Numbered from the stretch's first letter, positions 1,468-23,283 are shown. The stretch: 64,000 nucleotides of DNA from Macrostomum lignano (GCA_002269645.1 NIVC01001089.1:372001-436000), one strand, 5' to 3'. Numbers and translations are program-made. The notes: generated by a model from the letters alone, not told the origin.

Positions 1468-4258
1468 GAGCAGCGCACAGAGCCAGTCTGAATGTTCTAG
1501 TTGAGCATCTGTGCAGCAATACGTTAAAAGTGCAGGCCAGTGTAAAATATCGGCATTACACTCTACCTGTAACGAATGTCACCTGCCAGATTGTTGGCAG
1601 TTCCGAGGTAGGAGAGGATCAACTACAACTATCAAATAGTCTATTCAGTGTTTTCTAATCAGAACTTCACGAGCGACTAAAACAAACTTAGCAGGACCTG
1701 ACGATGCAACGAACAAGCCGGGACACCTGGAGTGCTCTCACTACCTGGTCTGACCTCGGGTCTCAGCCAAATCTCTTGGTGCGATGCATGGCTCTGCAGT
1801 TGTACTTTGGCGAGCTGGTCTTTAAAACAACAGCTGAGGCCAGTGTAACTGCTGAAAGATGCTTTTGTGAGCTGCCTTCGTCTAAAAAATGTCACTCAAA
1901 AATGTCACAAAGCACTGAGTATTCGGATTTTTAATTCCTTAATGTTTGCCCCCCCCTCAGGCGCGAACAAAAAGAAGCTGATTCATTACGCAATGACAGC
2001 TGCTGCAGCGCAACTCTTTATCATTGTCTGCGTTGCCGTGATCACCTGGAAACTCGCCTCTGTAAGTTCATGGTATCTATCTATCTATCTATCTATCTAT
2101 CTATCTATCTATCTATCTATCTATCTATCTATCTATCTATCTATCTATCTATCTATCTATCTATCTATCTATCTATCTATCTATCTATCTATCTATCTAT
2201 CTATCTATCTATCTATCTATCTATCTATCTATCTATCTATCTATCTATCTATCTATCTATCTATCTATCTATCTATCTATCTATCTATCTATCTATCTAT
2301 CTATCTATCTATCTATCTATCTATCTATCTATCTATCTATCTATCTATCTATCTATCTATCTATCTATCTATCTATCTATCTATCTATCTATCTATCTAT
2401 CTATCTATCTATCTATCTATCTATCTATCTATCTATCTATCTATCTATCTATCTATCTATCTATCTATCTATCTATCTATCTATCTATCTATCTATCTAT
2501 CTATCTATCTATCTATCTATCTATCTATCTATCTATCTATCTATCTATCTATCTATCTATCTATCTATCTATCTATCTATCTATCTATCTATCTATCTAT
2601 CTATCTATCTATCTATCTATCTATCTATCTATCTATCTATCTATCTATCTATCTATCTATCTATCTATCTATCTATCTATCTATTATCTATCTATCTATC
2701 TATCTATCTATCTATCTATCTATCTATCTATCTATCTATCTATCTATCTATCTATCTATCTATCTATCTATCTATCTATCTATCTATCTATCTATCTATC
2801 TATCTATCTATCTATCTATCTATCTATCTATCTATCTATCTATCTATCTATCTATCTATCTATCTATCTATCCATCTATCTATCTATCTATCTATCTACC
2901 TATCTATCTATCTATCTATCTATCTATCTATCTATCTATCTATCTATCTATCTATCTATCTATCTATCTATCTATCTATCTATCTATCTATCTATCTATC
3001 TATCTATCTATCTATCTATCTATCTACCTATCTATCTATCTATCTATCTATCTATCTATCTATCTATCTATCTATCTATCTATCTATCTATCTACCTATC
3101 TATCTATCTATCTATCTATCTATCTATCTATCTATCTATCTATCTATCTATCTATCTATCTATCTATCTATCTATCTATCTATCTATCTATCTATCTATC
3201 TATCTATCTATCTATCTATCTATCTATCTATCTATCTATCTATCTATCTATCTATCTATCTATCTATCTATCTATCTATCTATCTATCTATCTATCTATC
3301 TATCTATCTATCTATCTATCTATCTATCTATCTATCTATCTATCTATCTATCTATCTATCTATCTATCTATCTATCTATCTATCTATCTATCTATCTATC
3401 TATCTATCTATCTATCTATCTATCTATCTATCTATCTATCTATCTATCTATCTATCTACCTATCTATCTATCTATCTATCTATCTATCTATCTATCTATC
3501 TATCTATCTATCTATCTATCTATCTATCTATCTATCTATCTATCTATCTATCTATCTATCTATCTATCTATCTATCTATCTATCTATCTATCTATCTATC
3601 TATCTATCTATCTATCTATCTATCTATCTATCTATCTATCTATCTATCTATCTATCTATCTATCTATCTATCTATCTATCTATCTATCTATCTATCTATC
3701 TATCTATCTATCTATCTATCTATCTATCTATCTATCTATCTATCTATCTATCTATCTATCTATCTATCTATCTATCTATCTATCTATCTATCTATCTATC
3801 TATCTATCTATCTATCTATCTATCTATCTATCTATCTATCTATCTATCTATCTATCTATCTATCTATCTATCTATCTATCTAAATAGCGCCTTATGTTGA
3901 CTTCAAGCGCTTATAGCAACTCGCTGTCCAAAATCCCCAGTCCCGAATTCGGAGACCGACAGCTCGGGATCAAACAGCTCGAACTGGTAGATTCGCAGGT
4001 CAGCCGGCAGTTCCTCTGCAACCACTGGCCGCGAAAAAAGACGCTGCAGCCGCCAACACCGCTGCCACCTGCGATTCCGAGCCCTACGATGTCCCGACCA
4101 GCGACCGCGGCACTGCCAACGACTCCGCGTGGGTGTACGAGCGAGCGTCCGGTGGCAGCGCCTGCAGCTCGAGCCAGGCCGCACCGCCTCTGCCACCGTC
4201 GCGTTATGGCGACGAGGATGGCGGCTACATCAACTGGAAGAAGCTGCGACAGTCTTAA
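1468..4258 (+). CDS. Receptor A (3' part): Ig-like domain, TM helix and Tyr/Pro-motif cytoplasmic tail; paralogue of the gene at 17985-23283
   Basis: Exons 1468-1608 (AAHRASLNV...LPVTNVTCQIVGSSE|gt), 1692-~1865 (QDLTMQRTSRDTWS...RCMALQLYFGELVF), 1961-2061 (TM AAAAQLFIIVCVAVITWKLAS|gtaagt) and 3917-4258 (...EPYDVP...PPLPPSRYGDEDGGYINWKKLRQS*). Each aligns by eye with exons 10-12 of gene B. The junction near 1845-1960 is ambiguous (intron or frameshift). Confidence 0.8.
2074..3881. repeat. (TATC)n / GATA microsatellite of about 1.8 kb, nearly pure, filling the TM-to-tail intron of receptor A
   Basis: Starts 12 nt after the donor gtaagt at 2062 and ends about 35 nt before the acceptor at 3916. 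Confidence 0.99.
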
Positions 4259-20900: not shown

Positions 20901-23283
20901 CAGTTATAGGCTGTCGACATAGCCACCAAAGAGGTGATTTAAGGCCTTATACTATACTCGTACTTTCACAGTACAAGGATGTAGGTATCAATGCAATCAC
21001 CTGTGACTAGACCTGAGAAGTCCAAACTGATTGATTGGTAATGAGTACTGTTCATCGCACCAAGCCAAAAGTCAGTATTTCATAAACCCACATTAACTTT
21101 AGTTACCGTGGCTCAAGAGAGAAGAGAGAAGGGAGACGCAGGAGAGAAAAGAGCTGAGAAAAGACAAACTTCGAGCGGGTGGGATTGCTATTGTGAAGTT
21201 CCTCCCAACGGCCGGATAGAGAGGCTCCGCGGGCCGGAGAAAAAGACAAAGATCAATCAGAAGGGCTAGAGCATACGTATTTTTTACATTAATTTGTTGC
21301 TTAACTGTTGCTTAGTAAACTTTCCACGAATTATTTTTAGCGCCAGAAGACAAAGCCGCTGTTGATTTGTCAGCCAAGCAGCTCACCGATAAGCACGTCT
21401 CAGTGCACGCAATTTTGAGCAACAGAAACGACCGACTACCGATTGACAACCTGACGTGCGAGTTGTTGATTTTCACTAAGCTGAAATCTGCTCCGATGAG
21501 GGTAAGAAGTATTCTCTATAAGAAATTGTTGATCTAGAATGGAGAAAGCATTAAGTTTAACGGATTGTCCTAGAATTACCTAAAAGGTTTAGTAGGCAGT
21601 AGAAGATAGTAGGCATGTAGGGTTAGAGAGTTGCTTGTAACATTACAGTTGGTTTATTTTATAGTTCTGAATTTCACCTTTTCTGTGATCTGATCTGCGG
21701 CTCTCTGTATGCATTTAGAGACGTGATAAAGGTGACCAGGCGCATCACCTGACATTGCGTAATATAATTTTTCAGCAATATATTCCAATGCATCACGACG
21801 ACCAAAACATCTGGAGCTCAGTTGTTGCTGTGCCAATCATTTCTCAGGCAACCAGAATCGCAATTCACTGCTTGGCATTGCAAATTTACTTTGGCGAGAC
21901 AGTATTTCAGTCAGTGTCTCAGGCTGATGTGGCTTTATTGCAAACTAATATTCCAAAAACCGACGCAAATGTACTTCAAGCATTTGCTCAGACAGAAGTT
22001 CCGATACAGTCGAAGTGGAACCCAGATACTGACAAGTCAAACTCGATGCTGCTAATAGTGATCGCTGCGGCTGTTCAGTTGGTCATTCTGGTTTTTGTTG
22101 TCTTGGCAACATGGCGAATTGCGAAAGTAAGTTTAACAAAATTGTATTTTGAAAGATTTAGGCAGCATATGAATGAATGAATACAAATCTGTGTTTCAAA
22201 GCATGCACATTTTGATGGCCAATTGCCAGATCACATGCACAAAATGATTTGGGAAACTTTCGGCTTGACGAAATCGAAAGATGTTCAAAGTAACGAGTAT
22301 AATAATTGATACACCTGCCTTAATGGCAGATGTGCAACCGACAGCTCAGCCGCAGCTATTGCGCAGCGCATCTGAAGGCTGCGTACGGCTGTTCAGTCCA
22401 AGGACTGGGGGGTCGCCACACACAGCCTCAATTACCCCAGCTAATGCTGGCACCAATTTTACAGCTGGGTGAACTGAAGCAATGCAGAGATCGTTAAATG
22501 TCTTGCTCAAAGACACAAATTGTTTCAGTGGGATCAGGAATCGAACCCCCGACCCGCCAGTCGTGAGTCAGACGCTCTAACCACTAGGCTACGACCTAGT
22601 ATAGTGTAGCTACAAAGTATATCTAGATAAACAATATGGGACGGGTCTCCCACAGACAGATTTGAAGTCACTACCATAACTGCCGGTACGCAGTGGCCCT
22701 GACGTAGTTTGAAAATAACGATTCACACCAATGAGAGCCAATTCCTCCTAAAGTACAGAGTATTTAGGCCTGACGATTATAGAAAGTCAAAGGGCCGCTG
22801 TCGTGTTAAGCGTGTGTATGAGTAGTGCAGAAGTCTGCATCATCGCCTCAGTGCAGCTGGTTGTGAGACGATGCCACTGAAAGCGTTGTTGTTCTCCTCC
22901 AATTGTTATTGCGATTGGCCAATTAGCTAATAAAAACAAACTTGCAGATTCGAAATCGACGTCGAGCTGTCGCGGAAGACAAAATCAGCAGACGATCCAA
23001 CGGCGGCAGCGATGCAGTTGAGCTGACCGTCACCAACAGTGCAGAGTCTGGGGGTGCGACGGCAACAGCTGCGCCGTACGACTATCCCAGCAGCGATTGG
23101 AGCACCTTCGAGCAGCAGGATTCTGCAGGAACTGCGGGGCCAAACTATGAGCAAGTGTCTATAGACTCCGGTGCCAACAACAGACCGCCACGGCAGAATC
23201 TGCCGCTACCGCCGCCGCCGCCGCCTGAGCAGCAGCAGCAATCTGACGAGTCTCCCTACATAAACTGGCAAGGGAGAGGATAA
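17985..23283 (+). CDS. Receptor B: signal peptide, N-terminal beta domain (possibly discoidin-like), about four divergent Ig-like domains, TM helix and Tyr/Pro-motif tail
   Basis: 12 phase-consistent exons: 17985-18069 (MRSLVWHLILILLFGSRVSG), 18142-18330, 18551-18787, 18852-19072, 19156-19300 (KGDHGKLLQC, C2-set-like), 19372-19529, 20203-20374, 20452-20621, 20725-20875, 21341-21501, 21776-22126 (TM IVIAAAVQLVILVFVVLATW) and 22948-23283 (PYDYP...NYEQV...PLPPPPP...PYINWQGRG*). Confidence 0.82.
18385..18530. repeat. 39-bp tandem repeat, about 3.5 copies, in intron 2 of receptor B
   Basis: CTCTGAGACAGTGTGAGACCAGCTAGCATCTAATTAGCA repeated. Confidence 0.9.
19570..20072. repeat. 45-bp minisatellite, about 11 copies, in an intron of receptor B
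   Basis: Unit GGTATCATCTCCTGCGGTAGGGGTAGTCCCACCTGGTTGGACACA, contiguous with no spacers. Confidence 0.96.
22323..22596 (-). mobile_element. tRNA-derived SINE (CORE-like), full length
   Basis: Reverse strand has A box TAGCCTAGTGGTTAG, B box GGTTCGATTCC and body TGTCTTTGAGCAAGACATTTAAC...CCCAGCTGTAAAAT; near-identical copies at 29992 and 34941. Confidence 0.88.

Follow-up and report, generated by a model that had tools for sequence, protein, structure and literature searches.

Four plus-strand genes for single-pass membrane proteins lie at positions 1468-23283 of a 64,000-nt stretch of Macrostomum lignano contig NIVC01001089.1 (the window), in the order IgA, C1, C2 and IgB. The four genes are real and belong to two fast-evolving families so far found only in M. 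lignano, and the products look like cell-surface receptors. As a whole, the locus is probably best explained as a multigene locus in which tandem duplication enlarged two families of type I membrane glycoproteins that are not related to each other, with their genes head-to-tail and partly intermixed. The genes were rebuilt by hand, and 30 of 30 introns were GT-AG with each spliced reading frame intact, which bore out the initial annotation of four co-oriented single-pass membrane genes in 22 kb. The spacers were short, at 1.0-1.7 kb (4258 to 5231, 10563 to 12222 and 16458 to 17985), and no additional Ig- or CUB-family member was found between 24 and 64 kb of the window. No matching NCBI protein was found for C2 or IgB.

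Only the 3′ part of IgA (1468..4258, + strand) lies in the window, the 5′ two-thirds of the gene being upstream. Its in-window exons (1468-1607, 1692-1866, 1961-2061 and 3941-4258) form a GT-AG chain that encodes the last Ig-like domain, a TM helix (1987-2049) and a 105-aa tail, and their translation reproduces exactly residues 502-744 of the 744-aa GenBank protein BOX15_Mlig007224g1 (P0002). A 20-bp minisatellite at 1-1350 is intron of IgA, and an extra intron (1867-1960) divides its Ig4/TM exon relative to IgB. IgB (17985..23283, + strand) encodes 778 aa in 12 exons (17985-18069, 18142-18330, 18551-18787, 18891-19072, 19156-19300, 19372-19529, 20203-20374, 20452-20621, 20725-20875, 21341-21501, 21776-22126 and 22948-23283), of which the exon 4 acceptor was set at 18891 by the family alignment and the UniProt fragment P0001. 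This fragment was predicted independently and is 95% identical to IgB. The IgB protein begins with a signal peptide and an N-terminal module (exons 2-3); four Ig-like domains, each spread over two exons, a TM segment (22046-22114) and a 115-aa tail follow.

Structure prediction upheld the earlier Ig-like call for IgA. In the AlphaFold2 model, residues 175-605 formed four beta-rich Ig-like domains with pLDDT of 70-90, and Foldseek returned 351 PDB matches at E≤1e-3, the top ones nearly all IgSF ectodomains. The best fold match was SYG-2 D1-D4 (E 1e-12), followed by KIT, CSF1R, ICAM-5, nectin and RAGE. Across nine paralogues, the Cys columns C262, C319, C371, C421/C430 and C477 in successive Ig-like domains, together with W473, were invariant. 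UniProt labels many of the paralogues 'Ig-like domain-containing' and one fragment 'Nephrin', and some paralogue models contain fewer than four Ig-like domains. At the sequence level no similarity to PDB chains was found, the family profile matching CADM4 alone and weakly (E 0.5). The family shares with proteins of the nephrin/SYG-2, nectin, Necl, ICAM and KIT type a string of Ig-like domains, one TM segment and a disordered tail with tyrosine motifs. However, members of the nephrin/SYG-2 family carry at least eight Ig domains as well as FN3 and have orthologues across animals, whereas IgA has four Ig-like domains without FN3, and the Ig family carries an extra non-Ig N-terminal module and is species-restricted and multi-copy rather than conserved and single-copy.

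Across the final Ig domain and the TM segment, IgA and IgB share 21-25% amino-acid identity. In their tails, PYDVP (4082-4096), PPLPPSR (4184-4204) and GYINW (4223-4237) of IgA align with PYDYP (23074-23088), LPLPPPPPP (23200-23226) and PYINW (23254-23268) of IgB, which also carries NYEQV (23143-23157). The motifs PYD[VY]P, PxxP and a terminal YINW were thus kept between the two genes, and the remaining tail has diverged. Motifs of ITIM consensus (SVYLVL, VVYAQV and VQYANL) occur in some paralogues of the family; neither ITIM nor ITAM was present in the IgA and IgB tails. In nephrin, YDxV motifs of the tail recruit Nck. We infer that the tail motifs of the Ig family could serve as docking sites for SH2/SH3 adaptors, the phosphorylated tyrosines recruiting adaptors of the Crk/Nck and Grb2 types. 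Short Tyr/Pro motifs are easily produced by chance.

The initial annotation described the ectodomains as very diverged. This was true of the Ig domains, which are about 25-40% identical between paralogues (~30%); the N-terminal module, by contrast, is near-invariant. A tract at 18131..18690 (+ strand), comprising exon 2, intron 2 and 140 nt at the start of exon 3, was compared among 11-12 paralogues on several contigs, and DNA identity was 94-99% in exon 2, 92-100% in the intron flank and 90-98% in exon 3a, with the intron flank beside the module 100% identical in 9 of 12 paralogues. Past 18690, matches remained only for the two IgA copies, at 78%. The edges of the tract are sharp and do not fall at exon boundaries, and its GC content is raised (0.65-0.71). 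Near-identity of exon and intron within sharp edges indicates that the N-terminal module has been homogenised by gene conversion. As in other multigene families where one module evolves in concert by conversion, the tract is sharply bounded, includes intron sequence, is raised in GC and reaches 100% identity between paralogues that are otherwise saturated with change; it differs in spanning the N-terminal module only, about 0.55 kb, and in containing a 39-bp minisatellite (18395-18530, in intron 2 of IgB). It is speculation that this repeat promotes conversion. Its copy number appears to vary between paralogues. For the 145-aa module itself no PDB relative was found, and the AlphaFold2 model of IgA had a pLDDT of about 25-30 there, with no Ig-like fold recognised.

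The second family is represented by C1 (5231..10563, + strand; exons 5231-5277, 6047-6324, 9253-9343, 9576-9826, 9914-10085 and 10158-10563) and C2 (12222..16458, + strand; exons 12222-12265, 12786-13093, 13310-13400, 13561-13877, 13986-14067, 14150-14403, 15736-15904 and 15990-16458). The rebuilt C1 model (414 aa) is 100% identical to BOX15_Mlig031203g1 (P0025) and encodes a signal peptide, a CUB-like domain, a C-type-lectin-like region and a hydrophobic C-terminal stretch. C2 (577 aa) carries the first half of its CUB-like unit twice (exons 2-3 and 4-5), and after it come the C-type-lectin-like region, a TM helix and a tail of 21 aa. Exons of C1 and C2 correspond in length (47/44, 278/308, 91/91, 251/254 and 172/169 nt) and have the same phases, and they are 33-49% identical in amino acids, exon by exon. 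The best database relatives of C2 were 85% identical over 27% of its length, and 36% identical. Together with the invariant Cys columns and the aligned tail motifs of the Ig family, the same phases in C1 and C2 agreed with the earlier statement that paralogues keep exon phases, cysteines and a few motifs. Almost no tail had been ascribed to the CUB-CTL family; this holds for C1 and C2 in the window alone and is not a family trait, since paralogues carry tails of 22-67 aa. The proposal of a tailless ligand or co-receptor was drawn from two atypical members.

The CUB assignment is moderately supported by modelling. Although the CUB-family model was poor (mean pLDDT 37.6), most of its best Foldseek matches, including the top seven, were CUB-containing proteins, among them NRP2 CUB1 (E 2e-4), Neto2, PCPE-1, spermadhesin, C1r and C1s, and the UniProt name 'CUB domain-containing' agrees with the earlier call. 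PDB sequence searches at E≤10 gave no CUB chain among the CUB-family matches. The family would resemble CUB membrane proteins such as neuropilin, Neto and CDCP1 in its predicted N-terminal CUB-like beta-sandwich and single-pass architecture, but its sequence is very atypical of known CUB proteins. The C-type-lectin-like assignment is weak. All PDB matches of this region were to CD69/CD209, at E 0.028-1.4, and only the first half aligned; the CD69 match, to the first half of its lectin-like domain, would recall animal proteins that combine CUB and C-type-lectin-like parts. Predicted helices at 184-200 and 213-223 followed by strands would fit a C-type-lectin-like fold, at pLDDT 20-40. Against the earlier lectin call, no EPN/QPD/WND sugar-binding motif was seen when the family alignment was read by eye, and hhalign of the lectin-like part with the genuine C-type lectin of the window was negative (probability 0.07). 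An unrelated lectin gene at 50130-50909 carries GEPNN. Two CUB-family fragments bear the UniProt label LAM_G (laminin-G).

The Ig family does not look like plain 1:1 orthologues of conserved genes. An exhaustive search of 1.84 billion representative proteins gave it 35 matches at E≤1e-3, of which the ten weakest were checked and proved to be from M. lignano throughout; the CUB family was seen in M. lignano only, in a word-indexed search. Besides IgA and IgB, the Ig family counts at least 30 representatives, and besides C1 and C2 the CUB family counts at least 8 proteins. Both families are expanded, fast-evolving and, in the databases searched, restricted to M. lignano. One sampled locus, L001, is 97.6% identical to the window locus in non-coding DNA with dS of 0.024, matching the roughly 2% divergence of the M. 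lignano subgenomes (PMC10733133), and is therefore the homeologous copy. Between close copies dN/dS was 0.4-0.9 (0.40 for IgA, 0.38-0.51 for other pairs and 0.8-0.9 for some).

The 3′ end of C1 bears on an unlikely alternative, that the locus is largely debris left in a young polyploid genome, with C1, and perhaps C2 and IgB, being non-functional or decaying duplicates whose frames are still open by chance. The block with exons 4-6a and their introns (9500..10335, + strand) matches four paralogues, located on two other contigs, at 92-95% DNA identity, and this homology ends abruptly at 10335. The remainder (10336..10563, + strand), which supplies the C-terminal 75 aa with the apparent TM segment, is without paralogue counterpart; no DNA or protein match was found to the stalk, TM or tail of P0023/P0024, and GC is 0.364 compared to 0.60 in exon 6a. 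On this sequence evidence, the C1 C-terminus is a recent rearrangement in which the normal 3′ end was lost. The stalk, TM and tail would thus be gone, and reading into AT-rich sequence would give a hydrophobic end by chance. Between C1 and its homeologue dN/dS was 0.79; the CUB part, with 3 synonymous and 15 non-synonymous changes, gave 1.54. With C2 and IgB lacking an NCBI protein model, the loss of the C1 3′ end and the dN/dS values of 0.8-0.9, some family members may be decaying, and the odd half-CUB duplication of C2 would point the same way. However, C2 and IgB keep their frames open through 8 and 12 exons, each splice site being canonical, dN/dS is 0.40 for IgA and 0.38-0.51 for other pairs, and IgB is 95% identical to P0001. 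The Mlig_3_7 annotation was made from RNA-seq and transcript assemblies (PMC5730564); C1 and IgA carry its BOX15_Mlig tags and therefore probably have transcript support. The supplementary files that were searched nowhere mention these genes.

An 'orphan Ig exon' had been placed between C1 and C2. The stretch with the presumed open frame (about 11603-11818, + strand) showed no detectable similarity to Ig-family members, its best matches (E 0.03-0.3) lying in a 25-bp minisatellite, and the call has no support. The frame and a 25-bp minisatellite (11297-11516, + strand) fall within a conserved upstream region of C2-type genes (11281..12221, + strand), which has 82-92% identical counterparts before the C2-like genes of L001 and L002 (89% to L001 for 11281-13490 and 92% to L002 for 11857-12200). 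The reported order of the four genes stood; the exon did not, and because it is unsupported the succession of C1 and C2 is not a repeated pair.

This result weakens the earlier idea of a duplicated two-gene cassette, in which an Ig gene and a CUB-lectin gene function together in immune, self/non-self or gamete recognition and were copied as a unit. C1 is followed directly by C2, without an intervening Ig gene. Ten loci were sampled, each reaching about 10 kb to either side of its query gene, and six or seven of the ten had members of a single family: CUB genes only in L002, L006, L007, L009 and L010, and Ig genes only in L005 and L008. The families were intermixed at this locus, in the homeologue and in one more sampled array, the other sampled stretches being mostly unmixed tandem arrays; the homeologue is not independent evidence. 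Arguing for a cassette, Ig genes at several places have a same-strand CUB/CTL-like gene as their immediate upstream neighbour: a fragment before IgA (L003 5684-6315), so that the contig order with its upstream part is CUB/CTL-like fragment, IgA, C1, C2, IgB, and C2 before IgB. Two CUB/CTL-like fragments also lie within the Ig array of L004, and the N-terminal part of P0015 and of P0007, two older UniProt models, is CUB/CTL-like while the C-terminal part belongs to the Ig family, fusions that point to further adjacent pairs. On two further contigs the families lie on the same strand, 50-120 kb apart. On balance a cassette is improbable, the tails of the CUB paralogues also speaking against it.

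Family members were co-oriented in all ten sampled loci. With the short spacers, and with about 7% of M. lignano transcriptional units being precursors for two or more proteins (PMC5730564), this would be consistent with one precursor RNA that is split by spliced-leader trans-splicing, so that linkage reflects shared transcription and not partnership; such RNAs could also yield the fused models. Tandem duplication alone explains the shared orientation, however, and the conservation of sequence before C2 among C2-type genes is what a separate promoter might show; we consider a common precursor rather doubtful.

On the favoured reading of two tandem-duplicated families, an Ig-family protein would comprise a signal peptide, a near-identical head of 145 aa, diverged Ig domains, a TM segment and a disordered tail of ~110 aa with YDxP, PxxP and terminal YxN motifs, and a CUB-family protein a signal peptide, a CUB-like beta-sandwich, probably a C-type-lectin-like region, a stalk, a TM segment and usually a tail of 22-67 aa. 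The Ig-family proteins may act as surface recognition or adhesion receptors; the shared head would bind one partner common to all, and each member would owe its specificity to its diverged Ig domains. The role of the head is a guess, because its model is poor and it has no PDB relative. CUB genes would be nearby because both families grew in one ancestral neighbourhood that was later copied by polyploidy, with no obligatory pairs.

As tandem Ig-like type I receptors with diverged paralogues and tail Tyr motifs, the Ig family resembles Hydractinia Alr and vertebrate KIR/LILR, to which no homology was detected. The Alr analogy drawn earlier fails on one tested feature. Alr, whose high allelic polymorphism governs whether colonies fuse or reject, has a hypervariable membrane-distal Ig-like domain, whereas the distal module here is not recognised as Ig-like and is the least variable part (94-99%), as compared between paralogues in one inbred-line assembly. 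M. lignano is a solitary worm, and we know of no allorecognition phenotype. What is new here is a species-restricted Ig family with a gene-converted head, CUB-family tails of 22-67 aa and arrays that are mostly unmixed. It is a long shot that these genes form a new flatworm recognition system, with dozens of Ig receptors that combine a gene-converted 'constant head' of novel fold with phosphotyrosine tails and have CUB/lectin-like partners. If so, it would have a role, for example, in self/non-self, sperm-egg or mating-partner recognition of a reciprocally mating hermaphrodite.

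Four genes lie on the forward strand of the window in the order IgA, C1, C2, IgB, where IgA and IgB belong to an Ig family and C1 and C2 to a CUB (CUB/CTL-like) family. Models of all four were assembled by hand from the window sequence; the 30 introns are GT-AG without exception and no spliced frame is interrupted, which bore out the initial annotation of four co-oriented paralogous membrane-protein genes. The IgA exons (1468-1607, 1692-1866, 1961-2061 and 3941-4258, + strand) encode residues 502-744 of a 744-aa protein and match BOX15_Mlig007224g1 exactly. The first two-thirds of the gene is upstream of the window, whose position 1 is position 14315 of L003, the sampled locus on the same contig. 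C1 has six exons (5231-10563, +) and encodes 414 aa identical to BOX15_Mlig031203g1. C2 (eight exons, 12222-16458, +; 577 aa) and IgB (twelve exons, 17985-23283, +; 778 aa) are without a matching NCBI protein and represent a practical gain in annotation; IgB is 95% identical to the UniProt fragment P0001. No further members of either family were found in the window between 24 and 64 kb.

Three alternative features of the models were considered and rejected. A 13-nt mini-exon in C2 (13482-13494) creates a stop codon when included; the segment is surrounded by perfect splice sites (ttttcag/gtaaga) and could be a decoy or poison exon. A frameshift in the IgA tail was dismissed, as the annotated acceptor at 3941 preserves the frame, and for IgB exon 4 the family alignment favoured an acceptor at 18891 over one at 18852. 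The initial observation on the locus as a whole was largely correct. The orphan Ig exon that it placed between C1 and C2 was not recovered: no stretch there resembles any family member, and the presumed exon falls within an upstream region conserved among C2-type genes.

The fold of the Ig family was assessed by modelling IgA (P0002) with AlphaFold2 from a 22-sequence family alignment. Residues 175-605 were predicted to form four beta-sandwich domains (pLDDT 70-90); a TM helix spans 608-639, and the tail is disordered. Comparison of the model with the PDB by Foldseek gave SYG-2 D1-D4 as the best match (E 1e-12), and next the IgSF ectodomains of shark UrIg2, CSF1R, KIT, ICAM-5, contactin, RAGE and nectins. 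Sequence-level searches of the PDB with the Ig family returned nothing significant, and IgB as a single sequence nothing meaningful; what supports the Ig-like call, which was right, is thus the predicted fold together with the conserved cysteine pairs. Immediately after the signal peptide, 145 residues constitute a separate N-terminal module that AlphaFold2 did not fold (pLDDT 25-30). A profile search of the PDB with this module found no relative, only chance esterase matches (E 0.6-1.6); it may resemble a discoidin or galactose-binding-like domain.

The cytoplasmic tails of IgA and IgB are 105 and 115 aa long, and have PYD[VY]P, a PxxP stretch and YINW at the very end in common, all in aligned positions; the remaining tail sequence is diverged. 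YDxP/V resembles Crk/Nck SH2 sites, YxN a Grb2 SH2 site and PxxPxR an SH3 ligand; these motifs may be candidate SH2/SH3 docking sites. No ITIM or ITAM was found in IgA or IgB; some Ig-family paralogues carry an ITIM-consensus motif.

The Ig genes contain a sharply bounded tract (18131-18690) that contains exon 2, intron 2 (which includes a 39-bp minisatellite) and 140 nt from the start of exon 3. Across 11-12 paralogues on several contigs, identity was 94-99% in exon 2, 92-100% in the intron flank (exactly 100% in 9/12) and 90-98% in the exon 3 part. Outside the tract no DNA-level similarity was detectable among the Ig genes and protein identity was approximately 30%, with the exception of two IgA copies that match just past the edge at 78%. 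Because the intron is as strongly conserved and the tract edges ignore exon boundaries, these results point to homogenization by gene conversion rather than to protein-level selection alone. GC content is 0.65-0.71 in the tract versus 0.44-0.52, and this elevation would fit GC-biased conversion. The minisatellite of intron 2 (18395-18530) recurs as a stand-alone array of approximately 1 kb at L003 4510-5578, upstream of IgA, where it adjoins a CUB/CTL-like fragment and is without flanking Ig exons; this array may be the remnant of a rearranged family member.

A similar block occurs in the CUB family, where 9500-10335, introns included, is 92-95% identical among five genes. Some CUB-family genes (L001 31768-33440; L002 14691-20443, P0023) are mosaics. 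Their N-terminal half is C2-type, matching exon 2 of C2 at 91-97% amino-acid identity, and is joined to a C1-type lectin-like half that is 92% identical to C1 at the DNA level; this arrangement points to module exchange between CUB-family paralogues.

The initial designation of C1 and C2 as CUB-lectin proteins was upheld in part. The AlphaFold2 model of C1 (P0025) was poor (mean pLDDT 37.6), yet its best Foldseek matches, including the top seven, were mostly CUB-containing proteins, among them neuropilin-2 CUB1 (E 2e-4), Neto2, PCPE-1, spermadhesin, C1r and C1s. UniProt names the family 'CUB domain-containing', and C2 as a single sequence matched nothing meaningful in the PDB. A CUB domain in the family is moderately supported and plausible. 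The lectin part is weak: the region after the CUB domain was not folded by AlphaFold2 and aligned with the CD69 lectin-like domain over its first half only (E 0.028), hhalign gave no match between the family and a genuine C-type lectin encoded elsewhere in the window, no EPN/QPD sugar-binding motif was seen on reading the family alignment, and two family fragments are labelled laminin-G by UniProt. The term 'lectin' is therefore unproven for this family. The genuine lectin, unrelated to C1 and C2, is a secreted protein encoded by a single-exon 259-aa ORF at 50130-50909 (+), with a GEPNN (mannose-type) motif and matches to the carbohydrate-recognition domains of langerin, mincle and DC-SIGN (E 4e-8 to 1e-4).

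The CUB family had further been described as tailless, which proved wrong. Paralogue models with a TM helix have cytoplasmic tails of 22-67 aa, and the C2 tail is 21 aa. The hydrophobic end of C1 lies in sequence without a counterpart in the paralogues; homology of C1 to four copies ends abruptly at 10335, and GC content drops from 0.60 to 0.364. A recent rearrangement cost C1 its normal stalk, TM helix and tail.

To determine if the two families are linked elsewhere, ten M. lignano loci (L001-L010) were sampled, and within each all members lie on the same strand. On the window's contig a CUB/CTL-like fragment, approximately 8-9 kb upstream of the window start, precedes IgA, C1, C2 and IgB, and in L004 two CUB/CTL-like fragments lie within an array of at least six Ig genes. 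In the older UniProt models P0015 and P0007, a CUB/CTL-like N-terminal part runs on into an Ig-family C-terminal part; such fusions imply that both families are adjacent at further loci. On two contigs the families are 50-120 kb apart. In the approximately 10 kb to either side of the query gene, L002, L006, L007, L009 and L010 contained CUB genes only, and L005 and L008 Ig genes only. L001 (contig NIVC01000416) repeats the gene order of the window with IgA' and C1', the counterparts of IgA and C1, and a C2-like gene. Non-coding identity between the two was 97.6% within IgA and 95.6% within C1, with dS of 0.024 and 0.056, respectively. M. lignano is a young polyploid with three subgenomes that are roughly 2% diverged (PMC10733133); L001 fits this divergence and is therefore a homeologue, not independent evidence of a cassette. 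Given the single-family loci, the homeologous status of L001 and the tails of the CUB paralogues, the cassette as first stated, a duplicated pair of genes with one tailless partner, was not supported. The two families occur in the same genomic neighbourhoods and intermix locally, with no arrangement in repeated pairs. In M. lignano, approximately 7% of transcriptional units are precursors of several genes that trans-splicing separates (PMC5730564), so the closely spaced genes of the window could be co-transcribed.

All protein matches to the window came from M. lignano. When 1.84 billion representative proteins were searched exhaustively by HMMER with the Ig-family profile, only 35 matched at E<=1e-3, and the ten weakest of these were all from M. 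lignano; the Ig family is species-restricted in the databases searched. The CUB family was likewise found in M. lignano only, by word-indexed search only. In DNA alignments of close copies, dN/dS was 0.40 for IgA versus IgA', 0.51 for the database proteins P0012 versus P0011, 0.38-0.86 in the P0029 group, and 0.79 for C1 versus C1' as a whole, rising to 1.54 in the CUB part (3 synonymous and 15 non-synonymous changes). These values indicate fast or relaxed evolution and are no firm proof of positive selection.

The window combines short GT-AG introns with very long micro- and minisatellites, including (TATC) in an IgA intron (2074-3882, approximately 452 copies), (CAGA) in a C1 intron (6364-8805, approximately 610 copies), (GACA) at 39758-41033 (approximately 320 copies), and many 12-59-bp minisatellites across introns and spacers. 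A dispersed repeat of approximately 290 bp lies at 22299-22597 (IgB intron 11), ~29999-30268 (-) and 34917-35199 (+), and at least nine further copies occur in L004 and L005; copies are 74-91% identical. With its tRNA-like segment it looks like a SINE, and ARAGORN called no tRNA gene on it. ORFs at ~46186-49350 (-) and L001 12487-14907 resemble, by eye, integrase, reverse transcriptase and gag, suggesting LTR-retrotransposon remnants, and a C1' intron holds a separate RT/RNase H element (Pfam matches). An ORF at 53184-53957 (-) encodes most of a class A G-protein-coupled receptor, with melatonin receptors (E 4e-21 to 4e-16) and GPR84 as best PDB matches; another at 40878-41294 (-) starts like an LYR-motif protein, NDUFA6-like by eye, and then enters the (GACA)n repeat.

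The searchable full texts, the searchable supplements of M. lignano papers and broader literature searches contained no mention of the window genes or of either family. Judged from sequence, the putative Ig receptors form an undescribed, species-restricted and tandemly expanded family; its constant head is gene-converted, and a CUB/lectin-like family is intermingled with it. We know of no variable surface-receptor families described in flatworms that are comparable to the immune or self-recognition ones of other animals. Regeneration, stem cells and sexual selection are studied in M. lignano as a laboratory model, for which transgenesis and RNAi are available. If the genes encode ordinary adhesion molecules or are decaying duplicates, they are of local interest only. 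The Ig family is a clean example of concerted evolution limited to one gene module, and its layout of an invariant homogenized head, diverged Ig domains and Tyr-motif tails adds interest; a large species-restricted Ig receptor family would supply concrete candidates for recognition functions.
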